Counted from the first letter of the stretch, positions 7,113-38,309 are shown. The stretch is 64,000 nucleotides of DNA from Rebecca billardiae RCC1528 (GCA_965240325.2 OZ251225.1:558001-622000), one strand, 5' to 3'. Translations and numbers: made by a program. The notes: generated by a model not told the origin, from the letters alone.

Positions 7113-8397
7113 AAATCATCATAGATGTTAGTACGCCCATACAGTATGCTGATGACTTGCTGAGTATAGAAAAAGCATCATGCGTGCCCCTTCTGCCGAC
7201 TCGGCTCAAACTCGATGATCTTGAATTGCAAGACCGTGCACTGCTTGTACCTGGGACCACTGCCACAGTGTTGGGCTCGTATGCTGTTGGCAATGGCATA
7301 CCCCCGCCCCCTCTGGAGGCGGGCTGTCCACAGTGGAGTGGCCTGTCAAGACACTAGGTGTCTCGGTCAGTGGTTTGAGGTTGGGTGAGGGTGGTGGTTG
7401 GTTGGGGGCTGGCCAGGGTAGGGCTGGAGGCTTCGGCCGCCAGCCTGATCACCCGGAGCCCGTTATAAAGGGGAATTTTAAAGCATCAATTATTAGCAAA
7501 ACGTGTTCGCTTTCTATGAGAAAACACCGGACACTCACTTTCCCGAGAGCAGGGCTGGACGGCGCACGTGGCGAAAAAAAGGTGCGCACCGGGCGCCCGA
7601 GCCGCCCGCGCGGCACGCGACCTCAACTGCACCTGTTCCGATCTCGAGCTGTGGGCAGGGCGGGGTGTCGTGGATCCATGGGGAGACGCTCGGGGAAATT
7701 CGTCGGGGTAGTCTGGGACTGCGCGCGCACGCTCCCCGCCCTTCAGCGCGCCGCGCGTCGCCATGCTGAATTTCCGCGAGCGGGCGGGTGCAGGGGGGGG
7801 TAACGACATATTTTCCGAAATCTTGCGCTGTGACTTTCTTTTTCCTCCGACGGGTTTCGTCGTTTTTTTGTCTTCGGAATTGTCGTAGGTCTTCCCATGA
7901 AATTGTCCGAAGGAAAAAAAAGCCGTGCGTGTCCGAAAGCTGTCTGGAACGGCCTTCCGAGGCAGGCGAGATTGCAGGCCCTGTCCTGTAATTGACGTAC
8001 CCGTTGTCGTATTCGATCGGATTACGACCGTCACCTTAGAATAGGCACCATCTATTCACGACAGATTGGGATGCATAGCGGGGTTCATGCTTCTATACAG
8101 TTGCGATCGCGTGCGGACTATTTGTGCACTGGTCGTAGAGCGCATATCTCCGCATTTCTTCCAATATCTGGCTATATCACAGCCAATATTGAACCAAATG
8201 AGAATTTCTCAAATTCTCAAGAGTTCGTAGCCTAAAGAGGGGTAAACATCATATAGATGTTAGTACGCCCATATGCTGACTTGCTGAGTAGAAAAAGCAT
8301 CATGCAGCATCATCAATTAGCAAAACGTGTTCGGTTTCTATGAGAAAACACCGGACACTCACTTTCCCGAGAGCAGGGCGGGACGGCGCACGTGGCG
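7113..8397 (+). repeat. Local direct duplication: 7113-7183 plus 7481-7573 re-occur joined at ~8245-8397
   Basis: catcatagatgttagtacgccca...aaaagcatcatgc and agcatca...attagcaaaacgtgttcg...ggcgcacgtggcg are each present twice; the second copy lacks the ~300 bp between them. Confidence 0.85.
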
Positions 8398-17956: not shown

Positions 17957-18839
17957 ATCGACTCGAACGTGATATGGGGCCTTTGAGAGACCTTGCAATG
18001 GGACCCGGCCCCGCATCCCGATCACGCTGAATCTGCTCCGCGTGGTCACTCGCTCCGCGTGAAGTTGATGATTCAGGCCGCGCCGGCTCGGGTTACACCG
18101 CTCTCCTGCCTACCTTGATGTGCGCTTAGAGCGCAGAACGGGTTGCGGGCAGCTGTTGAGGACGTCGTTGCGCATCGGTCCCCTTAGTCAGAGTGAGTCG
18201 GGCTGACGCGATCACGCCGTCAGACTGAGACAGCCGCCCGGCCCCGGTTTGCGGACGGACTCACTGGGCCGCCGGCCGGCAACTCTATTATTGCAGGCTG
18301 ACACTGCCGATTCCCGACCGCCGCCGTAATGACCTGATCGACCGGGCTCAGACCACGAGACCGTGTCACAGTTCCTGAGTACAGGCCGCAGTACTATGCC
18401 TAATGGCTAAAGAGTAAAAGCCGTGTCACTTTCGCCTTCGGTCAATCCGGGCGCGGACTACTTCATATTATTAATGAGATCTCTCGGTCAATAACAGACC
18501 GCGGAATCATAATATATATATAAGGACGAGTCCTGCTGAGTCAAAACTCTTAATAGACATATAGTTTCCGTAAGTCCGATTCACTCGTCTGGTCCCGTGA
18601 CGCGGCGAGTAAGCTGCCATGAAAGTTTTGAAACAGGGCCGATGATACGACGGTGATTAGTTACTCGTCTGACGCGCGGACTCGCTAGTCGCTGTGTGAC
18701 CTGTGACTCGGTGTGAGTACACGGCTGTGTGTCAGTGTGACGTGTGTCTCTTACACTGACGACGGATTCTGTATTACATGCATGTTCATTGTCTAATTAC
18801 GCTAAGCTATATATATATATACATATATATTATAATTTA

Positions 18840-19345
18840 GTGGGGTCAGAGCTCCCACCGTCGGTTACACGCCCGAGTGACACAATCTCCCGAAATCTCG
18901 AAATTTCGGAAATATCTCCTCGGTTTATAACTGTTCGAGTCCTTTTAAGTTCGTTTAGGCTTAATTCCAGGGTGCAGAATCCGCCTGTGCCAATTTCAGA
19001 CTGCCAAAATGTGATCCGTGATAGCCGGTGCGATTCTGGTGCAAATGGCGAGATCGCCTTGGAGATCAGTGTATTTCGTCCCCTACTAATGTTGCCGAGA
19101 TCGTTACCGGTCGAGATTGAGGTCGTATCATATCTCCACTCTCCAGTATGCTGTGACATTTTTTCGCAAAACGTATCGTCAGCGTGACCCCAGGTCATTT
19201 CAGTAGGCGAATATTGACATCATCCCGAACGGTTTGACTTTGTCTTTGAGAGCCTCATCTCAAGGCGACATGTATGCTGCAGAAAGTTGGATTTTGCCAG
19301 GCTTTATTGGGGACACCACACCCCATCGTCGTGACCCCACACTGG
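18840..19345. mobile_element. AT-richer segment between TA tracts, possible transposon remnant
   Basis: Compositionally distinct from genes, bounded by (TA)n, short inverted tggggtca/tgacccca ends; no recognisable protein. Confidence 0.3.
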
Positions 19346-19379
19346 TGCGGCGGGGCGCTGGCCACCCGCCGCCTCTCTG

Positions 19380-19610
<231 letters not shown>

Positions 19611-19714
19611 TTGATTATTGGTCTATATATACATATATGTATTATAATTACCTAGCATATTTATTTATCCACATCTTAGTATGGATCTGCGCGCATTACT
19701 GTCGATCCTCTGAT

Positions 19715-19900
19715 TATGGCCCGCGGTGCAGGGCGGAGCGCGCAGCGTGGAGCCCGCACCAGCGGGCCCGAACCACGTTTCAAAAAGATCTTTGATCAAA
19801 GAAAAAAGGGACGGGGCGGTGTTTTCCAGAGTGGGGAGACCGAGTTTCGATTTTTTGAGACCTCCTTACACGTGGATTAGCGTCGAAAAAGGTCGCGTCC
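19715..19900. repeat. Dispersed repeat, inverted copy of ~4717-4950
   Basis: Direct sequence match in reverse orientation. Confidence 0.8.
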
Positions 19901-20779
19901 GCCGTCTTGAATAGTGAACAGAGGAATCAACGAAACCCACGCCCAAGTGTGCCAGGCTGGGTAAATTTTGTGGGTAGACTCTCGTTCTAGTGTGACCATA
20001 GTAAAATAATATGGCATCGCCGCCGCAAGATGCCATCACTAGAACGACAGTTGGTCAACATGATAGCAGTCCAACCAACTCCAATAGTGCGAGACATTCG
20101 AAGCAAGGCAAGGGCTGTATAGTGTATCGCCTCTTGATTGGGTAATTGTGGGTCGTACTCTCGTTCAGTCTATCATATATCAGTACATTGGCTCGCTAAC
20201 GATGTTGGGGGCATAAGGTCATTTTGGGTAATTGTGGGTATTATCATACCCAGTTGGGGGCCAGGGGGCGCGCGGCACGCGCTCGCTCCAAAAACGGGGC
20301 GAGCCCTCGATCGACCGCCAAACGGGGCGAGCCCTCGATCGACCGCCATCGGTGTGGACGACCGCGCGGAGCGCGCGCCGCGCGCGCGCCGCCCGCGCGG
20401 CCGCGGGCGCCTCCCGCGCGGGTGGCGCACGCACGCCCGCGCGCCCGCCCGCGCGCGCGGCCGCGTTTGCGGGCGCGCGCGGATTGTCGAAGGCTTCTGT
20501 CTGTCGGGCGTTGCGTCACTCGTGCGCCATGGCCATGTCGTGGCGTGCGCATGTGCGCACTCTCGGTTGGGTGGTGCGCGGGCGGCGGCGCTCTCCTGAA
20601 TTCTACCCCGCGCCCGTTTCGCTGTGCGTGCGCGCTGCGTCGCGCAGGCACGCGAGAGTACCTGCGGCTCCCGCGCGGCCGACGTGGACGGTCAGCCCCG
20701 GCGCGCCGCTCGAGCACGCGCTCGCGTGTCTGCGTGGACTGGGTTATAGCGCGCGTGCCGCGCCTTCTTTTCTCGGTGC

Positions 20780-26189: not shown

Positions 26190-29100
26190 CTATCGGGTCA
26201 GGAGCGAGCTCGGGGCCGCGCCCAGGTGCGAATCGACGTGCGGCGCGTTGAGCCGCTTCACGCGCGCGCGGAGGGCGGCGAGCGCGTGCAGCTGTGCGCG
26301 TGTGCGCACCACCTCGGCGGCGACGGCGACCGAGCCGGGCTCGCATGCTGGTAGGCGCGCGGCGCGGGTGGGCGTGGCGAGGGCGCGCGGCACGCAGAGG
26401 GGTGCGCGGAAGTGAGCCCGTGGCGCAGGCCGAGCGCTGAGCGCACTCGCCTCTGCGGAGCGCGTGTGCGGCGCAGGGCGCGCACGCCCCGGGCAGGGCT
26501 CGCGGCCGCGCGCGCTCACCTCCGAGCGCAGCCGCCATTGCGTCGGTGGCGCCGCCATGGCTGGCGCTGTCCGCCGGCGCGCGCGCGAGCGCGTCCGTGA
26601 GCGCACTCAGTGCGCGCCCCACATCCCCAAGCCCGTGCGCAGCCCCCGCGCCCGTGCGCTCCTCGCTCAGCGCCGTGTGTGCTCGCAGCGGCGCGAGGAC
26701 GCGCCCCTCTGCCGGCGGCGGAGGCGGAGCGCGCGCGGCTGCGCTCTCGTGCAACCGTGAGCGCAACGCGCCCATCACCTGCGCACGCGCGCGTGGGCGG
26801 GCAGCGTGCGGCGGCGGGATGCGTGGGCGACGTGCGCAGCGGGTGCGCTCGGCGCGGCAGCCACGCACGCGTGCGCAGCAGCTCGCACGGCACGCAACAC
26901 CACGCTCACGCACACGCACACGCACACGCACACGCACACACGCGCGCGCGCGCGCACCTGCTCATGTCTGTCCAGCGCCGCGCGCAGCACGGGCGGCACC
27001 GGCCACGGCTGCGTGCCGGCCTCGGCCGCCTCGGCGGCGTCCGCCGCTCGGGGCTCGGCCACTCCCGCCGGCCGCGGCGGCGTGCCCGCGGGCGGCTCGG
27101 GCGGTAGCTCGTCCGTTTGACACGCCGCGTGCGTCACCAGCACGCGCGCCCCGCGCTCGATGACGACGACTGGATGGAATGGATGGCCCGCGCCGAGGGA
27201 GAGATTGGCGGCGCCGAGGACGGTGGGCAGGTCCGCGGCGGCGGCGGACGGCGGCACTGCCGCCGCCGCGCCGATCGAGCTGCCGCTGCCGGCGCTCGCG
27301 TCGGGGCGTGTCGGCGCGCGCGCCTGCGCGGCGCCGCCGGCAGCGCCCGCGCGTGGCTCAGCGTCGCGCTCGGCCTCAGCCGCCGCCGCCGCCATCGCCG
27401 CCAGCTCGGCGCCCAGCGCGGCGCTGTCCTTGCTCGCGCGGCGCGAGGCTCGGCGGCTGCCCGCCGAGACGGGCGGCGCCTCCGCCTCGTCCGCGGCGGC
27501 ACCGCCGGGCTGCGCGTCGCTCATGTCCGACGAGTACCCGCCGCCGCGGCCGCGCGAGCCGTCCGCGCCGCTCAGGGCGCTCGCCGTGTCGCTCACGTCC
27601 AGGTCGGCCATCGAGAGGATGCGCGCGCCGCCCAGCTGCATGCCCGGCGCGGCGAGGCGCGCGGAGCGCGGCGCGGCGGGCTCGGCGGGCGAGCTGGGTG
27701 CGCGCGACGCGGGCGTGGCGGGCCGAGCCGCCGCGCCCGCCCCGTCCTCACCCTCCTCGGAGGACGAGAGCTCGAGATCGTCGATGGAGCGCAGCAGCCC
27801 TGCCGCCTCGGACGCGGACGCGGTCGCTGCGCGCAGGCCCACCAGGCTGGTGAGCATGCCGCCGCCCTGCGCGGAGCGGGTGCCGCCGCTCGCGCCGCTG
27901 CTGCTCGCGCTCAGCCCGTGCGCGGCGGCGCCCGCCGGCGCCGCCGGCCGCTCGGGCTGCGGAGGCTGCGGCGCGCGCGGCGGCGACGGCTGCCACGGCG
28001 GTGGCGGCCGCGAGCTCGCGGCGGCGGCGGCGGCGGCGTGCGTGGGCGACGCGGGCGCCGACGGGACGGCCGACGGCGCGGCGCTTTGGTCGTCCTTGCC
28101 CTCGTCGTTGCCCTCGTCCGAGTCGGAGAGGTCGAGGTCGTCGAGGCTCAGCACGATGCCGCGAGACTCGACTGCGGACGGCCGCGCCGCCGCCGCCGCC
28201 ACCGCCGCCGTGGGCTTGAGCTGCGGCGAGCGCAGCGACGGGCGCGGCGCCGGCTGCGCGCCGCTCGGCGCGCCGTGCGGCGGAGTCGGCGGCGGCGGCG
28301 AGCGGCTGACTGACGAGAGCGCAGAGCCGGGCGAGCGCAGCGGCGGCGGCGCTGCCGCCGCGCCGAGCGCGATCGGCGTTGGCGGCTGCGCCCGCACCTG
28401 CTGCGCCCGCGCCGCCCGCGCCGCCTTCGCCGCCTCGATCTGCGCCTCGAGCCTCGCCACCTCCGCCTGTCTGGCCGCGCGCTGGGCCTCGACGCTCAGC
28501 GGGCGCGAGGAGCCCACCTCGGGCGCGGCCGGGGGCGAGCGCAGCGGCGGGGAGCGCGTGGGCGGCGCGGGCGGCGCGGGTGCGCTCGCTGGGCGCTGCG
28601 CGCCCGCGGCGGGCGGCGGGGCGCCGCCGAGCGTCGCCTCAGCGCCGCTGCTCGCCGGGCGGCGCAGCAGCCTCCGCGCGCGCTCGCGCTCATCGTCGGA
28701 GTCGTCCGTGAGGACGACGCTCTCGTCGGAGGGCGTGGGGGACGGGCTCAGAGCGCGGCGCGCCGTCGCGCCCGCGCGGCTTGCGCCCTTTGCCGTGCCC
28801 GTCGGCCGGCCGCCCGTGCCCGAGCCCGCGCCCGAGCCGGCCGCCGACGCGCCGGTGCCGGCGCCGGCGCCCCAGCCTGCTGTCGAGGCAGCCTTGGCCT
28901 GCTGCTTGTTGGCCTTGGCCTTCTTGCCGCCCGCGCCCTTCTTCTTGGGCTCCTTCTTGGATGGGGCGGCGCCGCTCGTGCCGCCCGCTGCGCCCGCCGG
29001 CGTCTTCACGCCGAGCGCGCTCAGCGCGCTCTTGGCGTGCGCCCAGCCCGCCTCGCCCGATCGCGGGTTGTCGCTTGCCCAGTTCCACGCCGCGCCGCCG

Positions 29101-29216
29101 CCACCAGTGCGCTTGCCCGCGGCGCCGCTCGACGTGCTGCCACGCGCGCCGACGGGCGGGCGAGACGGCCCGCCGAGCGCGTCGCTGCCGAAGAGGTCGG
29201 GCTTCTTCAACGGCAT
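26190..29216 (-). CDS. Hypothetical low-complexity Ala/Pro/Ser-rich protein, 3 exons (introns ~26957-26779 and ~26519-26350)
   Basis: Long ORF from MPLKKPDLFG with GC3 bias; recurrent (S/D)xxDL(D/E)(L/V)S motifs; splice sites join ALDRHEQ|VMGALRSRL and a last exon ending SSLLTR*. Confidence 0.6.
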
Positions 29217-29496
29217 CCGGCTGGCGAGGAGCACGCTTGACCCCACCTTCAAAACCGTGCTGCCGCCATTCGTGCAGAGTCCTGACCTTCTGACAATGAT
29301 GAGGTGGTGCAAGATTTGATTTCGAGCCGGGTACGTAGGACCCGCACCGCGTATATCGGGGTATGTTGGAATGTATCGGAATTCGGAATGCATGCTGCGG
29401 TTATCTTGCCGCTTGCCCGCCCTTCCCGTACACCGGCAGGTGGGCGAGCAGCAGGCGTTGCGAGCGCCGCCTGCGCCGTCGCTCGCGCGCGCCAGC

Positions 29497-32400
29497 ATGG
29501 GGGCGTCGGAGGACGAGGACGATGTCGAGATCCCGGACCCGTCTCTCGACCGCTACCTGCGCGTGTGCAACATGCGCTTCGCCGCCGTGCGCAACTCGGG
29601 CGAGCTGCGCGAGCCGTCCAAGGTGGCGGTCGTGGACATCTCGGACGAGTCGAAGCAGGAGGCGCTGGCGAAGCGGCTCGCGACGCTGCTCGACGACGAC
29701 TGGAAGGTGGACGAGTACTTTGGCAAGCCCACCGTGTGCATCCTCATCACGGGCGGCGCGCAGGACTTCCGCATGCTCCCGCGCGTCGAGCGCGTGTTCC
29801 GCGAGGGCCTCGTGCGCGCGGCGCAGATCACGAACGCGTGGGTGTTCACGGGCGGCTCGGCGAGCGGCGTGATGAAGCACGTGGGCCAGGCGCTCGCGCC
29901 CCACCCGGACGTGCCGTGCATCGGCATGCCGCTCTACGGCAACGTCGTGGGCAACGACCAGATCGAGATCAAGCTGGGCGAGCTGCCGGCGCGCGAGCCG
30001 GACGAGCGGCCGTCCGAGCTCGTGGCGGACGAGTACGACACGGTGGACTACGTGTACTCGGAGGAGCTCAACTCGAAGGACTCGGCGGCGCTCGAGCCGC
30101 ACCACTCGCACTTCATCCTCGTGGACACGGGCAAGCGCGGCTCGTCCGCGTGGGGCGGCGAGATCGAGTTTGGGCTGCTCACGCAGCTCGCGTACTGCGA
30201 GCTCGAGGCGCTGCCGGCGGTGATGCTCGTGGTGCAGGGCGGGCCGAACACGCTGAAGATGGTGGTGTCGGCGGTGAAGCGCGACGTGCCCGTCGTCGTC
30301 GTCGCGAGCTCGGGCGGCGCGGCCACCGCCATCCGCGACTTCCTCACGCGTACGGGCGCGGAGGAGGAGGCGATCGGCGAGGCGGAGGCGCGCTTCATCG
30401 ACGCGGAGGCGGAGGAGGCGCGCGCGCGGCAGGCGGTGGCGGACTCGGCGGGGCTGCCCGTCGCGGACCGCGTGGAGCGGCGGCGCGCGCTGCGCCAGGC
30501 GCGCCAGCGCCGCGAGCGCGCCTCGCAGGTCCTCCTCGCCCTCGAGCGCCGGCTGCTCGCCAAGACGGCCGGCATGGCTTCGTTTGGCTCCAAGGTTGCC
30601 GAGCTGCGCGCGCTCAAGGCGCGCGCGGGGCTGATCCAGCTGTTCGAGCTCGACCCGTCGTCGACGGCGGACATCTCGCAGAGCATCCTCGCGGGCGTGC
30701 GCCGCTCGCCCCGCCTGCCGCCCGAGAAGCTCCTCGAGCTCGCCATCGTGTGGAACAATCTCGAGATGATCTCGGAGGTGCTCACGGGCCACGACGCGCG
30801 CGGCAAGGCGGGCAGCGTCGAGCGCGCGCGCTCGAGCCGCACGCTCTCGCGCGCGAGTGCGTCGAGCGCGGAGGTGCTGGAGCAGAAGCGGCGCGCGATG
30901 TGCAAGGCGCTGCAGCTCGCGCTCGAGATGCAGCGCACCGACGTCGTCACCATGCTCCTCTCCAACGGCGCAGACATCAACTCGGTCGCGCTCTCACGTC
31001 TGTACGGGCAGCGAGAGAAGAACCCGTTTCGACTCTTCGCGTACCTGCAGCAGCGCGCGCGGCGCGCGCACGAGGAGCTGGCGGGCGGCGGGCGCGCGGG
31101 CGCGAACGGCCGGCTGCCGCGCGGCGCCTCGCGCGGCGTCGGCCACGGCAGCGGCTCCGCCGCCGAGGCAGGCCGCGCGGGCGGCGCGCGGCGCGCGGCG
31201 CGCGTCGACTCGTCCATCCTCAGGCAGGACGAGGTGGCGGCCCTCGTGGCGGAGGAGCGGGTGTTCCTCTCGGACCGCGTGTTCAAGCCGTTCATCGAGA
31301 TCTTCCTGGAGCCCGAGTTCCACCGCACCGACTTCTCGCCCGCCGCGCGCAGGCCCGCGGCCGCCGGCCCGGGCGGCGGCGGCGGCGGCAGCCCGAGTGC
31401 GAGCGGCGCGCGCGCGGCGGCAGACGCGCAGGCGGAGGCGGACCGCGCGGCCGCCGCCGCCGCCGCCGCGAGCGGGACGCCGCCGCCGACGCCGCCGCTG
31501 GGCGCGCCGGCGCGCGGCTTCGCGCCGGCGCGCGGCGCGTCGGGCGCCGCCCCCGCGCTGCGCGCCGGCTGGCGCAAGCCCGCCACCGAGCCCGCGGCGG
31601 GCGAGTCGGGCGGCCTGGCCGGCTTCCCCGCCGGCACGCGCATCGAGGACGTCTTCTGGTGGGCGGTGCTGATGGGCGACATGGAGCTGGCGACCGTGCT
31701 GTGGCGGTTCTCGAAGCAGCACCTGCGGCTGGCGCTGCTCGCGGCGGAGGTGCTCGAGAACATGATGACGCGCTCCGCGCAGGGCCAGAAGCACCGCGAC
31801 GACATCGAGCCGATGAAGGGGCGGTGGCAGCAGGTGGCGCTGGACGTGTTGGAGCACGTGCAGCCGACCGCCAAGGACAAGCGCACCGTGTTCGAGGTGG
31901 CGGAGGAGGTGCTGGTGCACCCGGTGGCGGGGCACACGGCGATCGACCTGGCGATGGCGCTCGGTGCCAAGTCGTTCACCGCGCACCGCTACTGCCAGCT
32001 CATCATGAGCCGCCGCTGGACCGGCCACTCCCGCTCGGGGCGGCGCGCGCGGCTGCGGCTCGAGGACGACACGGCGCCTCACTGGAAGGTGGTGCTCAAG
32101 CTGCTGCTGCCCTGGTTCTGGGTGGAGGACGTGCTGGACTACTTCGGGCTGCCGTGGGTGGCGAAGGTGGTGGAGAACGCGCACCCGCGCCGCGCGCGCC
32201 GCGACTCCGTCGCACCCGCCCACCCTGCGCAGCACGACGAGCCCGCCCGCGCGGGCTGGTGGCACGTGTACACGATTCCGGTCGTCAAGTTCTGGAGCCG
32301 CACGCTCGTGACGCACGTCGGGCTCACGCTCATCTCGCTCGGGCTGATCGCGGGGACGTGGATCACCGAGCCGCAGTCGCTCTCGCGCTGGCCGCGCGAC

Positions 32401-32497
32401 GTGCTGCAGGCCGTGCTCGAGGTGCTGTACCTCTTCTGGGTGCTGGGCTACGCGCTCGACTGGGCGGAGGTGCACGCGCGACGCCTGCTGCCGCCGA

Positions 32498-32534
<37 letters not shown>

Positions 32535-34815
32535 GCAGCTCGCCGCGCACATGTCCGCGTCGGGGCTCAAGCCGGCGTGGGCGTGGATCGACTCGACGTC
32601 GCTGCTCTCGTTCGCGCTGAACGCCGGGCTGCGCTCGCTCTACCTCCTCCTCCTCGCGCTGCGCGCCGTCCCCGAGGGCCGCTCCGACTTTCTCTCCGAG
32701 TGGCTCTTCCCAATCTCGATGGCGATCTCGGCGCTGTTTGCGTTCGGCCGCTTCATCGGCGAGACGCTGATGGTGTTCCAGCAGCTGGGCGTGCTGACGA
32801 TCTGCATGCGCGACATGTTCGCCAAGAACATCAACTCGTGGGCCGTCGTGATGGCCATCGTCATCCTCGCCTTCGGCCTCGCCTTTGTCGCCCTCGTGCC
32901 GTCGTACCCGCTCGCGGGCACGTGCGGCGGCGGCGGCGGCAGCGGGCTGCCCGACTGCCCGACGCGCTTCGCCACCTCGCCCTTCTTCATCCCGGTGTGG
33001 GCGGTGTTCGGCGACTTCAGCATCGCGGACATGGAGGACGCGCGGCCGCTCGCGCCCTCCATCTTCCTCATCGGCCTCCTCGTCGTCGCGCAGGTGCTGC
33101 TCCTCAACCTGCTCATCGCGATGATGACGGGTGCGCGCGCCGGGCGCGCGGCGCGCGCGCGCGGACGCGCGAGCGTGTGCGGCGCGCGCGCGCGCGCGCG
33201 CGCACCCGGCGCGCTCACGGCCCCCGGCCTCGCCCGGCGCGCAGAGACGTACACCAACGTGATGTCCTCGGCGCTCATCGAGTGGAAGTACGACCACATG
33301 CTCCTCGTCGACTACTACAAGACGACCGCGACCGCCGCGCCGCCTCCGCTCAACCTGCTGCTGCTGCCGCCGAGGCTGGCGATGCGGCTGTGGCCGCGCG
33401 GCCGCGCGCGCCGGGGCGCGGAGGCGCACAAGCCGGCGCGCGTGAGGCCCGCGGGCGGCGGCGCGCGCGCCGACGGCTCGAGCGAGGTGGAGCACCGCGA
33501 CGAGACGCGCGCCTTCCACGCGTACATGCGCACCATCGAGGAGTCGGCCGCGCAGGACGTGTCCGCGCGCGTGCAGGGCGTGACCTCCATTGTGGGCGGA
33601 CTCGAGCTCAAGCAGATGGAGGACCGCGAGGCGCTGGACAGCCACGTGCGCGCGCTGCGCGGCGAGATCGAGTTCCTGCGCGCGCAGGTTGCGCACGTGC
33701 CGCGTTCGCGCCTGCGCGAGCTCGCCGCCAAGGCGGCGCAGGGCGGCGGCGCCGAGCCGCTCTCGACGCATGCGCTCGCGCGCGCCGGGCTGCGCACGCT
33801 CCACTTCCGCGCGCGCTCGGAGGAGAACAAGGCGTACGAGGGGCAGCGCACGGCGGTGCCCGACTGGCGCGTGCCGTGGGAGGTGGAGTGGGCGTCGTAC
33901 GAGCCGAACGAGTGGACGCACCCCGTCGTGCTCGGCGACCCGCCCAACGGCAAGCCGCGCCCCGTCTGGGCGGACCCCGCGGACGCACTCCAGGTCGACT
34001 TCACCAAGCGGCGCTCGCACGAGCAGGAGATCGTGTGCTCGCCGATCGGGAGGCCGCTCAACCCGCGCGGGCGCACGGGGATCAGCGGGCGCGGGCTGCT
34101 GGGCAAGTGGGGGCCCAACCACGTGCGCGCGCCCGCGCCCGCGCCGCCCCGCCTGCGCCGCGCCGGCCGTCGAGGCGCCGCGCCTCACGCGCGCGCGCGC
34201 CGCGCGCCGCGCGCCGCGCGCCCGCGCGCCCGCCTCACCCGCCGCTGCGCTCGGCGCGCGCGCCAGGCGGCCGACCCGATCGTGCTGCGCCGCCGGCCGG
34301 GCAGCGCGGGCGCGCAGCCGCCCAAGCTGCAGATGGTCGCCATCATGCGCGCGGACGTGAGCAAGTGGGCCATCCCGGGCGGGATGGTCGACGAGGGCGA
34401 GCTCGTCTCCGAGACGCTGCGGCGAGAGTTCTCCGAGGAGGCGGGCTCGCTCGCGGACCCGCTGGCCAAGGAGGAGCTGGAGGACAGGCTGGACGAGGTG
34501 TTCGGCCCGGGCGGCGACCTGGTGTACGAGGGGTACGTCGACGACCCGCGCAACACCGACAACGCGTGGATGGAGACGACCGTGCACGCGTTCTTCATCG
34601 ACGACGAGCTCGCCGCGCAGCTCACGCTCGAGGGCGGCTCGGACGCGATGGACGCGCAGTGGCTCGACCTCGAGGAGACGGGCGTGCTCGCGGACGACGT
34701 CGACCAGCTGTACGCCGACCACAAGCAGTTCGTGCTCCGCGCGCTGCCGCTCGTGCACAGGCGCATCGAGCGGCTCGAGGCGGCCGCCGCGACGGGCGGC
34801 GGCTCGGCCAAGTGA
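29497..34815 (+). CDS. TRPM2: TRPM2-like cation channel with N-terminal SLOG/MHR domain and C-terminal NUDT9-homology ADP-ribose pyrophosphatase domain; introns 33131-33244 and 34123-34266
   Basis: MHR1/2: ITGGAQDF, AWVFTGG, GVMKHVGQAL, LEPHHSHFILVD, VVQGGPNT; six hydrophobic segments, pore WAVFGDF, S6 VLLLNLLIAMM, TRP-box EWKY; NUDT9-H: RPLNPRGRTGISGRGLLGKWGPNH|AADPIV, WAIPGGMVDEGE...REFSEEA, YEGYVDDPRNTDNAWMET. Confidence 0.9.
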
Positions 34816-35252: not shown

Positions 35253-36668
35253 TCATCGCGCGTGCGTGCCGTCAGGCGCCGCGACGAGCTCGTCGACCGT
35301 GCGGCCGGCTGCGAGCGCGTACAGCTCCGCCGAGAGCGCCCGCCACTGCTCGACGCGCTCGCGCAGCACAGCAGCCTCCTCTTCGGCGCGCACAGCTGAC
35401 TGGGTGGCTGCCCCGCCGCGCGCCGTCGCCATGCCGCCCGTCGCGAGCGCGTGCGCCGCGCCCCAATCGCACGCCGCGGCGGCGCGGACGGCGGGCCGCA
35501 CCGGTACGCAGCCGAGCGCCACCTGCGCCGCCTCGGCCGAGCCCTTCGGCGGCGGCACTTGCAGGTACTTCTTGAAGGGCTGCACGGCCGAGACGGGCGG
35601 CGCGCGCGGAGGCGCGCTCCACGCGAGCGCGCGCACGCTCTCGCTCGGCGCGGCCTCGCCCGGCGCATCAAGTTGCTGCACGAGCTGGCGCGTGCCCGCG
35701 TCGAACACGCGCACGCCGCCGTCGGCGCCCACGGTCGCGAGGCGCGTGGAGGCGTCGAGCGTGCACAGCGCGTGCACCGCGCCCTTGTGCGCGACGAGCG
35801 GCGGCGGGCCGTCGGCTGCGCCGCCCGCGCCACGCCCGCCGGGCCATGCCGCGCTCTCCGCGCCGCCGTCCGCCCTCGCGAGCCCGCCGCCGCCGCCGTC
35901 GCCGTCGCCGCCCTCCGCGCCCGGCCCGGCGACGAGCAGCGCCTCGTGCACGGTGCCGTTGGACGTGCCGCAGAAGACGCGGTGCTCGCACGCGGAGAGC
36001 GCGACGCAGCGCACGGGCGCGGGCGCGCGCAGCGCGTACAGCAGCTCACCGCGCCCCAGCTCGCGCACGTGCACGCCGCCGTCGAGCGAGCCGGAGACAG
36101 CCAGCGCTGACGGCGCCGAGCCGCCGACTGCCACGTCGCTCACCTCGAGCGAGTGCGCGCTCCACGTGAAGGTGGGCGAGGGCGGCTCGGCAGGCGACGA
36201 GCCCGGGCCGCAGCCGCCGAGCACGTCGGCGAGCGACCACACCGTCACCAGCGCATCGGCGCCGCCGACGATGAGCGCGCCGTCGTCGGCGCTGACCGCG
36301 AGCGCGGTGCACGCCTTGAAGTGCGCGTCCCACGCGCGGAGGAGCTGGCCAGTGCGCACGGCCCAGATGTAGAGGCGCCCGGTGACCGAGCCGCCGATGC
36401 AGTGTGCCCCGTCCGACGTGCTCGCCAACGCGCGCAGCTCCTCGGGCACCTGGCAGCGGAAGATGGGCTGCTCGCGCGCCCACGCGTAGATGTGCACGCT
36501 CGGGCGGCCGAGCTGCGCGGCGACGAAGTGGTCGGCGTCGAGCACGCAGAGGCCGTGGCCCGGTGCGGCGCAGTCCTTGTACGCGCGCACGAGCAGGCCC
36601 GAGCACGTGTCCCACACGTGCACCTCGCGCCGTCCGGAGCACGTGGCCAGCAGGGCCGTCGTGGCCAT
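35253..36668 (-). CDS. WDR18: WD40 protein WDR18/Ipi3 (Rix1 complex, pre-rRNA processing)
   Basis: VPEELRALASTSDGAHCIGGSVTGRLYIWAVRTGQLLRAWDAHFKACTAL...GGADALVTVW, WSAHSLEVSD, C-terminal coiled coil (LRERVEQWRALSAELY). Confidence 0.85.
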   Translation of the reverse strand: MATTALLATCSGRREVHVWDTCSGLLVRAYKDCAAPGHGLCVLDADHFVAAQLGRPSVHIYAWAREQPIFRCQVPEELRALASTSDGAHCIGGSVTGRLYIWAVRTGQLLRAWDAHFKACTALAVSADDGALIVGGADALVTVWSLADVLGGCGPGSSPAEPPSPTFTWSAHSLEVSDVAVGGSAPSALAVSGSLDGGVHVRELGRGELLYALRAPAPVRCVALSACEHRVFCGTSNGTVHEALLVAGPGAEGGDGDGGGGGLARADGGAESAAWPGGRGAGGAADGPPPLVAHKGAVHALCTLDASTRLATVGADGGVRVFDAGTRQLVQQLDAPGEAAPSESVRALAWSAPPRAPPVSAVQPFKKYLQVPPPKGSAEAAQVALGCVPVRPAVRAAAACDWGAAHALATGGMATARGGAATQSAVRAEEEAAVLRERVEQWRALSAELYALAAGRTVDELVAAPDGTHAR

Positions 36669-36848
36669 GCTGGTTTTCTTGACGATGCTGCGGCTGCGGC
36701 AATTTTGTTCCGCGGCCGAATAAAAACGGAAAAACCGGGGCGGGCTGCCAGCCTGCCACCGAAATTCGGCGGTTGAAGAGAAGCGTGCGCGGAGCTTGCA
36801 GCTTTCAAGAGCGACGAGCTCGAGCGGCCGGTGTCGTTGGTGGTGGCC

Positions 36849-38309
36849 ATGGACGACGACGGCGCTGCCGAGCGCGATGCGAGCAGCCGACGCGCTCGGA
36901 GGCGCGAAGCGGCGGACGTGACGCCGCCGAGACAAGAGGCTGCCCGCTCTCCGCGCGCGAGCCCACAGCGCACGGACGATGCGCCGGGCGATGCGAGCCG
37001 GCGGCGGCGGAGGGGCGGCTCGGCGGACGGCGGCGCGAGCGCCTCCATCGCCGAGCCTGCGCAGGCGGGCGAGGAGGTGCCGGCCAGCGCGGTGGCGCCC
37101 GGGCGGCGGCGGAGACAGCGTGGGCGCGACAGCGTCACGAGCGAGACAGCGGGTGAGCTCCCAGTCCGGCGCGAGCTCGTCAGCACCGCGCGCGCGACGG
37201 CGGGCGCAGTGCCGCTGTGGACCGCGGGCGACCGCGCGCCGCTGCTCCCGGTCTCCGAGCTTCAGGCGGACATCGACGAGCAGCTGAGCGCGCCTGATGT
37301 CGCGCGCCTCGCCGACGGCGGCGCCATGCCCGAGGGCGAGGCGCCGGGCGCGGGCGCGGGCGGCGGTGCGCCCGCGCGCGGCACCACCTCGCGGTACGTG
37401 CAGGACTCGGTGTCCGGACAATTCCTGCGCGCGCACCCGGACGCGGAGGCGCGCACGCGCGAGCCGCCGGGCGCGAGCGACACGCTCCTCGCCACGCGCG
37501 CCGGCGCGCTCGGCGCGGGCGGCCTCGCCGGCACGACCACGCGCGGCGTCGCGGCCGCGCTCACGGGCGCGCGCGGGTTGCTCGCCGGGCTTGCGCTGAT
37601 GCACCTGCTGCTGCTCGCGCCGACGTCGGCGGAGGCGGAGCGGCCGACGGCGTTCGTGGTGTACGCGCCGCTCGCGCTGCACACGCACGGCGTCTTCCAG
37701 GCGCTCGTCGGCGTCTCCATCGTCGCCACGCTCGACGCGCACTTCATGTACTCGCCAGACGCGCGCGCGGCCAACGCGGCCGCGGCGAGCGCGGCGAGCG
37801 CGCGCGGGCGCGCGCTCGTCGCGGCCGCGCACGGCTCGTTCGGCACGGCGGTGGTGGGGCTGCTGTATGGGGCGGCGCTGCTGCTCGGCATGCTGCAGAC
37901 GCCCATCGAGTTCACGCTGTACACCAAGTACGCCGCCCGCCGGCTGGGCGTCGACAGCGCGACGGGCGCGCTCGGGCCAGAGAAGGGGCTCGCGGAGGTC
38001 CGCGCGGTGCAGTGGGACGACCTCAGCGCAGAGGCGGGCGAGGAGGCGGCGTCGTGCGCGCTCGCGCTGCTCACGTGCGGCGCGTTCCCGCCGGCGAGGG
38101 CCGCGCTGTACCGCGGCCTCGGCCTCACGCGCGACGTCTTCTGCCTCTGCGCCTGGCTGCTCGCCGCCGTGATCTTTGCGATGAGACCGCCGCCCGCGCG
38201 CCGGCTCGGCGGGCCGCAGATGGCGCCGCCCGCGCTCGACCGGCGCGAGCTGGCGGAGATGCGCCCCGCGAGGGCGGGCGCGAGCGGCGCGCTGCACCAC
38301 ATCGCGTGA
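36849..38309 (+). CDS. TMEM237-like ciliary transition-zone membrane protein
   Basis: Disordered N-terminus then 4 hydrophobic segments; GLLAGLAL...YAPLALHTHGVFQALVGVSIVATLD resembles the TMEM237 pattern GxLAG...Y...FxxL...S.ISAFD as I recall it. Confidence 0.6.
   Translation: MDDDGAAERDASSRRARRREAADVTPPRQEAARSPRASPQRTDDAPGDASRRRRRGGSADGGASASIAEPAQAGEEVPASAVAPGRRRRQRGRDSVTSETAGELPVRRELVSTARATAGAVPLWTAGDRAPLLPVSELQADIDEQLSAPDVARLADGGAMPEGEAPGAGAGGGAPARGTTSRYVQDSVSGQFLRAHPDAEARTREPPGASDTLLATRAGALGAGGLAGTTTRGVAAALTGARGLLAGLALMHLLLLAPTSAEAERPTAFVVYAPLALHTHGVFQALVGVSIVATLDAHFMYSPDARAANAAAASAASARGRALVAAAHGSFGTAVVGLLYGAALLLGMLQTPIEFTLYTKYAARRLGVDSATGALGPEKGLAEVRAVQWDDLSAEAGEEAASCALALLTCGAFPPARAALYRGLGLTRDVFCLCAWLLAAVIFAMRPPPARRLGGPQMAPPALDRRELAEMRPARAGASGALHHIA

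Follow-up and report, generated by a model that had tools for sequence, protein, structure and literature searches.

A 64,000-nucleotide stretch of the Rebecca billardiae RCC1528 genome (GCA_965240325.2 OZ251225.1:558001-622000; hereafter the window) carries, on its plus strand at 29497-34815, a gene that joins a TRPM-type channel to a C-terminal NUDT9-type domain (NUDT9-H), the layout of the TRPM2 channel-enzymes, or chanzymes. We consider it likely that the locus is a genuine gene with three exons belonging to a Pavlovales-type haptophyte, that it encodes a TRPM cation channel with a competent C-terminal ADP-ribose pyrophosphatase of the NUDT9 type, and that the two parts were fused independently of TRPM2, of which the gene is not an orthologue. 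In separate phylogenies, both the channel and the NUDT9-H domain fell outside holozoan clades that had 100% support.

The original prediction, made from the DNA without knowledge of its source, had suspected a host outside opisthokonts. This was borne out: the host is a Pavlovales-type haptophyte, which puts the gene outside opisthokonts. The nearest named relative of the C-terminal third comes from Pavlovales sp. CCMP2436 (KAJ1631042.1 and the Diacronema sp. CCMP2436 transcript P0208, 50% identity over aa 1374-1792, coiled coil included). The two closest loci, L001 and L003, lie on contigs of 70-71% GC from two sequencing runs. The window's side of the channel tree has named members from Prymnesium parvum (two genes) and Scyphosphaera apsteinii along with a Tisochrysis-like MMETSP transcript, and relatives with the same layout were found in Prymnesium, among Tisochrysis-like transcripts and in numerous marine metagenome proteins.

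Gene model and domain architecture

The TRPM2-type architecture that had been predicted was upheld by Pfam, by matches to solved structures in the PDB and by alignments, which place SLOG/MHR, six membrane helices, TRP box, coiled coil and NUDT9-H in one protein. A phmmer search of the PDB returned TRPM2 of Nematostella vectensis (nvTRPM2, 6co7; 5.5e-80), Salpingoeca rosetta (srTRPM2, 8sr7; 1e-62) and human (hsTRPM2; 1.7e-46), as well as human NUDT9 (1q33; 4.4e-46), with aligned pieces spanning SLOG, MHR3/4, pore/S6, TRP/coiled coil and NUDT9-H. A feature search of the ESM-Atlas led to TRPM2-like clusters (score 0.97). All features of the TRPM superfamily were found (SLOG/LSDAT; MHR3/4 and six membrane helices with a pore helix, FG-x filter and LLNLLIA-type S6; TRP box and coiled coil), as were those of the NUDT9 family, namely a cap (NUDT9_N) and a Nudix core with GGMVD...REFxEE. 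The domains are placed as follows:

29671..30333 (+): SLOG (LSDAT_euk), the MHR1/2 nucleotide-binding module (Pfam PF18139, 1.1e-35, aa 101-321)
31642..31986 (+): TRPM2-like domain, part of MHR3/4 (Pfam PF25508, 1.6e-09, aa 758-872)
32272..33129 (+): transmembrane region from pre-S1/S1 (VVKFW...) to S6 (...LLNLLIAMMT), from an L-INS-i alignment
33283..33318 (+): TRP box WKYDHMLLVDYY, with Tyr1315 at the position of the TRP-helix Glu (nvE1110)
33601..33690 (+): C-terminal coiled coil (LELKQMEDREALD...), aligned with the C-terminal region of nvTRPM2
33757..34797 (+): NUDT9-H domain, cap and core, holding intron 2 (hidden Markov model envelope, spliced aa 1425-1723)
34378..34446 (+): Nudix box GGMVDEGELVSETLRREFSEEAG, with the REUXEE motif intact (REFSEE); occurs once

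The N-terminal region also matches PF18171 (5e-26), and its SLOG aligns to MHR1/2 of the three solved TRPM2 proteins (nv, sr, hs). Over S1-S6, the pore and S6, the window protein can be matched column for column to TRPMs of animals, choanoflagellates and haptophytes. The coiled-coil segment is kept in L001, L003, P0208 and P0076, the last a relative of 476 aa with 58-68% identity. The NUDT9 envelope spans 270 of 298 model positions, and the Pfam NUDIX match covers aa 1658-1773.

An uninterrupted stop-free open reading frame (ORF) runs from 29371 to 34815 (+; 1814 codons) in a window of 63-77% GC. GC at third codon positions (GC3) is 0.93-1.0 along the frame (0.3-0.65 at second positions, GC2) and drops to ~0.75 on both flanks, which indicates that the frame is coding throughout. 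Met43 of the ORF (29497, the start originally predicted) is the likely start because the alignment with orthologs begins there and GC3 is lower upstream (only 0.77 in the preceding 120 nt).

Two introns inside the ORF are in frame and stop-free, so that a plain reading of it carries 38 + 48 false residues. Both have lengths that are multiples of three, open with GTGCGCGCGCC and close with CAG (GTGCGC...CAG). In both, GC is flat at ~0.9 in all three codon phases (~0.92 in intron 1), unlike in their flanks. HMMER alignments to TRPM2 and NUDT9 bypass both stretches (aa 1586-1632 in the case of intron 2), and the residues of neither are present in solved TRPM2/NUDT9 sequences or in the relatives L001 and P0076. 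The corrected coding sequence (29497-33130, 33245-34122, 34267-34815) encodes 1686 aa when spliced:

29497..33130 (+): exon 1, from the likely start Met (MGASEDE) through SLOG/MHR1-4 and S1-S6, ending in LLIAMMT and the first base of a Glu codon
33131..33244 (+): intron 1 (114 nt), between S6 and the TRP helix; excision restores LLIAMMT/ETYTNVM
33245..34122 (+): exon 2, TRP helix, coiled coil and the NUDT9-H cap subdomain up to KWGPNH
34123..34266 (+): intron 2 (144 nt), inside NUDT9-H (cap to core); excision restores KWGPNH/AADPIV
34267..34815 (+): exon 3, NUDT9-H core with the Nudix box, to the stop codon

No insert interrupts the first junction, LLIAMMT/ETYTNVM, in L001, L003, P0076 or any of the TRPM relatives. 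The second, KWGPNH/AADPIV, is contiguous in L001 and P0076, and L003 has an unrelated 37-codon read-through insert there (L003:~7150-7260). Intron positions vary among the three orthologous loci, the KWGPNH/AADPIV site being the only one in common (window and L003). More generally, introns of the host genome can be in frame, stop-free and ~92% GC, and a reading of ORFs then silently gains false residues. We rejected a shared "introner" element: the introns are both (CG)n-rich yet dissimilar, and their 5 matches of a common 11-mer against 1.9 expected are not significant.

It is very improbable that channel and Nudix belong to two different genes or that the locus is a decaying pseudogene. Automatic gene callers do divide the orthologs into two ORFs, as separate genes would have it, but the cuts fall at introns or frame changes, and in the window, L001 and L003 alike the two parts are collinear and share a strand. 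P0076 unites S6, TRP box, coiled coil and a complete NUDT9-H in a single ORF. Full-length haptophyte transcripts are also available (P0200/P0015), of which P0200 (MMETSP, Isochrysidales, 2037 aa) has SLOG, channel and NUDIX on one transcript; the Prymnesium protein P0020 has the same order and a PH domain. Against decay stand the 1772 stop-free codons with their high GC3, as does the conservation of the catalytic residues across the clade.

Origin of the channel-enzyme fusion

Three origins had been left open by the original prediction: a very ancient fusion, horizontal transfer or an independent fusion. Separate trees of the channel and of NUDT9 favored the last and disfavored both a single ancient fusion and transfer from holozoans.

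For the channel tree, NUDT9 domains were removed, and 997 well-filled columns were kept for 57 rows (E-INS-i); 104 full-length rows were aligned by FFT-NS-2. The tree is unrooted, and named cnidarian, echinoderm, ctenophore and Salpingoeca punica proteins served as stand-ins for nvTRPM2 and srTRPM2. In a quick tree under posterior mean site frequencies (PMSF), holozoan-side and algal-side groups were split at 98 by the Shimodaira-Hasegawa-like approximate likelihood ratio test (SH-aLRT), with the holozoan clade at 100. Ultrafast bootstrap (UFBoot) support under LG+F+G4 was 100 for the holozoan clade, the deep split, the trio formed by the window gene and its two orthologs, a clade with internal Nudix modules and the canonical C-terminal haptophyte clade. 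This run comprised 125 iterations, with a bootstrap correlation of 0.988 at iteration 100, just under convergence, and leaves the branching order among algal clades unsettled. No algal rows fell inside the holozoan channel clade, in agreement with a FastTree of the 104 rows. The window trio sits on a long stem of ~1.0 changes per site in the PMSF quick tree.

The NUDT9 tree (careful PMSF, unrooted; 51 rows whose fusion state is known) was divided at 100/100 into a holozoan and a protist side, each with standalone and fused domains. The holozoan side holds standalone fish, insect and fluke NUDT9, TRPM2-fused domains and other fusions. The protist side holds standalone NUDT9 (E. huxleyi, Coccolithus, diatom), TRPM C-terminal and internal copies, and copies fused to OSCA, ADP-ribosyltransferase (ART) and peptidase partners. 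The standalone NUDT9 of E. huxleyi is nested among haptophyte fused domains (96/91), and an approximately unbiased (AU) test rejected a single clade of haptophyte and holozoan TRPM-fused NUDT9-H (delta log-likelihood 193, p 2e-120). NUDT9 domains thus group by lineage and not by fusion state, which favors independent fusions over an ancient fusion or a transfer from animals.

A single SLOG-TRPM-NUDT9H fusion that predated the haptophyte/opisthokont split, descended vertically and was lost in most eukaryotes would account for a C-terminal layout that is identical across two distant supergroups, and the channel parts are reciprocally separate, as vertical descent predicts. The NUDT9 domains speak against such a history on every count given above (the two sides at 100/100, the AU test and the position of the E. 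huxleyi protein), as do the mid-protein Nudix modules of a second algal clade, and we regard it as improbable. That haptophytes acquired a whole TRPM2 gene horizontally from an animal or a choanoflagellate, or that the contig is animal contamination, is highly implausible. The top solved-structure matches are indeed animal and choanoflagellate TRPM2, though solved structures exist only for those. In neither domain tree does any algal row lie within the holozoan clade, at 100% support; moreover, the GC3 of ~0.97 and the GC-rich introns fit the window's neighboring genes, the orthologs lie on other algal contigs of similarly high GC, and haptophytes have many and varied members of the family.

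Under an independent fusion, which we prefer, the window gene would belong to a large algal/protist SLOG-TRPM family on a branch apart from the holozoan TRPM/TRPM2 clade. Its NUDT9-H would most likely have been recruited from the algal lineage's own NUDT9, apart from the animal/choanoflagellate TRPM2 fusion. Such a recruitment implies that the chanzyme layout is convergent, and with it that the gene is no TRPM2 orthologue.

Haptophytes also have SLOG-TRPMs in which no NUDT9-H was detected: P0266 (Prymnesium parvum AB1Y20_021774) and P0241 (Scyphosphaera apsteinii). Nudix-linked and apparently Nudix-free members of the family thus coexist in haptophytes, as in animals; some of the "Nudix-free" calls may be truncated gene models.

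A second layout was observed in unnamed marine metagenome proteins, in which SLOG is followed by two to five NUDT9-H modules mid-protein and then by MHR3/4 and the channel. These proteins (P0001, P0002, P0004-P0010, P0013, P0021, P0025, P0038, P0048, P0339) are the internal-Nudix clade of the channel tree, where they form one clade with 100% support. P0002 (locus L002:340-6846) is encoded by an intronless 6.5-kb gene adjoining a Na/H exchanger.

In protists, NUDT9 has fused promiscuously. Its other partners there are OSCA/RSN1_7TM-type channels, PF03496 ADP-ribosyltransferase domains of the exoenzyme type, an S9 peptidase (in thraustochytrids, e.g. Hondaea) and an inosine-uridine nucleoside hydrolase (P0033, P0036, P0037, P0049; P0029, P0058, P0059, P0062, P0067; P0030, P0031, P0034, P0035; P0028). 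The fusion of OSCA to NUDT9 would be another channel-plus-ADPRase design.

We offer one broader reading tentatively. The chanzyme design may be convergent in general, a lineage's own NUDT9 having been recruited at least twice (C-terminally in holozoans and in haptophytes) and probably a third time, as the internal tandem copies of the unnamed marine protist clade. OSCA-type channels would likewise have recruited NUDT9, and the pocket of the Pavlovales-type protein would perhaps have been retuned.

Enzyme site, pore and nucleotide pocket

Residue numbers were taken from PDB alignments and published papers, those of srTRPM2 from PMC11479946. The Nudix box was found intact, as predicted, and the remaining catalytic residues of NUDT9 are retained. 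The residues of srTRPM2 correspond to the window protein as follows:

srW1264: W1533
srD1330: D1635
srE1386 and srE1390: the two key Glu of REFSEE
srD1426 and srR1428: D1725 and R1727
srD1460 (catalytic base): D1758
srF1372: Met

The standalone and fused NUDT9 relatives examined (box GMVD) likewise have Met in place of F1372. L001, L003, P0076 and P0208 all conserve the Nudix box. Because mutations in this box destroy the activity of NUDT9 and nvTRPM2 (PMC6461439) and the catalytic residues are all kept here, the domain is predicted, with good confidence, to hydrolyze ADP-ribose.

The pore, the N-terminal ADP-ribose (ADPR) site (N-site) and the transmembrane Ca2+ site map to the following features:

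33007..33042 (+): selectivity filter FGD and acidic post-filter stretch FSIADMEDA, aligned with nv ...YGELFLDEI
30151..30174 (+): N-site motif WGGEIEFG, with Trp261 at the adenine-stacking aromatic and Gly268 at the nvR271/srR275/hsR302 position
30316..30318 (+): Gly316, at the nvR329/hsR358 position, a phosphate-binding Arg in animal TRPM2
32458..32469 (+): S2 DWAE, with Asp1030 and Glu1033 at the nvE893 and nvQ896 Ca2+-site positions
32581..32592 (+): S3 AWID, with Ala1071 at nvN918 (lost) and Asp1074 at nvD921 (kept)

The filter that had been described as acidic is so: FGD occurs once, at 33007-33015, and has an acidic residue at its third position. The closest ortholog, L003, also has FGD, and L001 and other haptophytes have FGE. 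In nvTRPM2, a Glu at the third position gives a very high Ca2+ preference (PMC6461439, PMC8145809). The same two papers uphold the premises that had been drawn from the literature, that is, the REUXEE box, the RIL of human TRPM2 and the filter Glu of nvTRPM2.

The further claim of an ADP-ribose-gated channel was, in that form, not supported. Human TRPM2 uses Y295, R302 and R358 at the N-site (PMC8145809). The window protein keeps the aromatic (W261) and has Gly at both arginine positions (G268, G316), and its residues at nvT143, nvT179 and nvT307 are T, S and T. At the two arginine positions, L001 has Met and Gly, and L003 has Gly and Gly. In the family alignment, the first N-site Arg is kept in all other algal and holozoan TRPM2-like rows; the window gene and its two orthologs alone have lost it, the sole further row without it being a TRPM1-like oyster protein. 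In srTRPM2, F268A or R275A removes ADPR sensitivity (PMC11479946), and in nvTRPM2, Y264A and R329A raise the EC50 more than 1000-fold but R271A leaves gating unimpaired (PMC7201885). Across these published mutants, one or other N-site arginine was essential in each orthologue tested. The transmembrane Ca2+ site, which is E893, Q896, N918, D921 and E1110 in nvTRPM2 (PMC8145809), reads D1030/E1033/A1071/D1074/Y1315 here, with one residue identical, two acidic substitutes and two lost (non-coordinating); Prymnesium- and Tisochrysis-type proteins retain the full site. Since both N-site arginines are Gly and three of the five Ca2+-site residues differ, ADP-ribose gating of the window protein appears doubtful. 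Judged by these residues, the Pavlovales-type branch is a divergent subfamily in which gating by ADPR and Ca2+ cannot be assumed.

A canonical chanzyme, opened by ADP-ribose and Ca2+ at the nvTRPM2/srTRPM2 sites and hydrolyzing its own agonist, is in our judgment unlikely. It would be in keeping with the domain order of TRPM2, the intact NUDT9-H, the SLOG fold motifs with W261 and the equivalents of nvT143 and nvT307 (and a Ser at nvT179), and with the acidic residues (D, E) in S2 and the Asp kept in S3. It sits poorly with the two glycines, given the effects of srR275A and nvR329A, with the loss of the first arginine in the Pavlovales-type trio only, with the changes of the S3 Asn to Ala and of the TRP-helix Glu to Tyr, and with the trio's long stem.

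Several observations count against an independently fused channel with an altered pocket, the reading we prefer. The nvTRPM2 R271A mutant, which also favors a canonical chanzyme, still gates, and so the loss of that single arginine is not decisive alone. We infer the gene model, exon structure and single transcript alike, from homology, splice motifs and composition. As to the trees, monophyly of the haptophyte C-terminal NUDT9-H was borderline (p 0.043), the group in the AU test was defined once a quick tree had been viewed, many metagenome rows carry no taxon names, and short rows of uncertain fusion state were excluded. Gene conversion, or replacement of the domain by the lineage's own NUDT9, would also give the same tree as a fresh fusion.

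On the independent-fusion reading, the 1686-aa product would be a tetramer-type TRPM cation channel whose pore, with FGD and its acidic post-filter, would conduct cations including Ca2+. Its NUDT9-H would split ADP-ribose to AMP and ribose-5-phosphate with Mg2+, and this hydrolysis would limit the local nucleotide signal, as proposed for nvTRPM2. The SLOG pocket retains its fold motifs and stacking aromatic and has lost both ADPR-binding arginines. With the membrane Ca2+ site altered as well, the channel's ligand may be ADPR, with a weak response, or a related nucleotide. On the broader reading offered tentatively above, it may be tuned to another nucleotide signal, a candidate being the product of a TIR-type NAD-cleaving receptor, with the Nudix domain still clearing ADP-ribose.

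Genomic context, significance and known systems

Upstream of the gene lies a low-complexity Ala/Pro/Ser/Gly-rich ORF of ~800-900 aa (26775-29498, -) in which a Pfam scan found no family; codon-phase GC across this interval favors minus-strand coding. Its true start is probably ~280 bp from the TRPM start, forming a divergent pair, and the ~280 bp may be a promoter region common to both. Downstream is a WD40-repeat ORF (35256-38300, -). Among the neighboring ORFs checked, nothing suggested an operon-like partner adjacent to the TRPM gene. Elsewhere in the window, an AT-rich island (18500-20250, GC down to 0.24) holds a (TA)115 microsatellite (19381-19611) and no convincing ORF.

Our literature search for TRPM2/NUDT9 in algae, haptophytes, Emiliania, stramenopiles and dinoflagellates turned up no account of such proteins, and public databases list the relatives solely under "hypothetical protein" or without a name. 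Papers on TRPM evolution assign the SLOG- and Nudix-linked ancestor to animals and the unicellular lineages nearest to them (PMC7306681, PMC13143021). A 2026 preprint on choanoflagellate TRP channels does not exclude an earlier origin and leaves algae unmentioned (10.64898/2026.06.15.732245), as does the srTRPM2 structure paper. In a Gephyrocapsa multi-omics preprint, a "TRPM" is one of the listed channels that calcifying diploid cells up-regulate, and it is not analyzed further there (10.1101/2024.05.26.595999). The haptophyte family shows the SLOG-TRPM core to be far more widespread than in the current picture. If NUDT9-H was acquired independently, the pairing of an ADP-ribose hydrolase with a Ca2+-permeable channel would be a repeatedly selected solution and not a one-off. 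These proteins are candidate Ca2+-entry pathways in haptophytes and would offer new natural chanzymes for structure/function work, including natural "mutants" of the ADPR and Ca2+ sites.

On the holozoan side, ctenophore TRPM2-like proteins with NUDT9-H are now in NCBI (P0063, P0064 and P0065, from Mnemiopsis and Bolinopsis); a BLAST survey in eLife in 2019 had found none (PMC6461439, figure 1 legend).

The closest characterized system is nvTRPM2, the cnidarian chanzyme (6CO7), which is the best solved match and shares with the window protein its domain order, an acidic third filter residue, an acidic post-filter stretch and a canonical Nudix box with catalytic residues. Identity is ~30-40%, within domains only. 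The window protein differs in having Gly for nvR271 and nvR329, D/E/A/D/Y in place of E/Q/N/D/E at the Ca2+ site, FGD in place of YGE in the filter and long disordered Ala/Gly/Pro-rich inserts, and in lying outside the holozoan clade in both trees. The srTRPM2 channel (8SR7 series) is likewise a chanzyme of a unicellular organism with a REF-EE box, and all its named NUDT9-H ADPR residues map to the window protein except F1372. However, srR275, essential for ADPR gating, is Gly268 here, and srTRPM2 belongs to the holozoan clade.

Within the algae, Prymnesium parvum AB1Y20_016041 (P0020) and P0200 share the order SLOG-TRPM-NUDT9H, have kept the Nudix box intact and lie on the algal side of the channel tree. 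Unlike the window protein, with which they are only 25-45% identical, both keep the first N-site Arg, a full E/Q/N/D/E Ca2+ site and an FGE filter, and the PH domain of P0020 is an N-terminal extra. The C-terminal 300 residues of the window protein match human NUDT9 (1Q33), a soluble mitochondrial ADPRase, across cap, core and REFxEE, but the window domain is fused to a channel and groups with protist, not animal, NUDT9. Human TRPM2 has the same overall architecture; its NUDT9-H is an inactive gating module (RILRQE) and its filter is FGQ, whereas the window protein has an active-type Nudix box and FGD.

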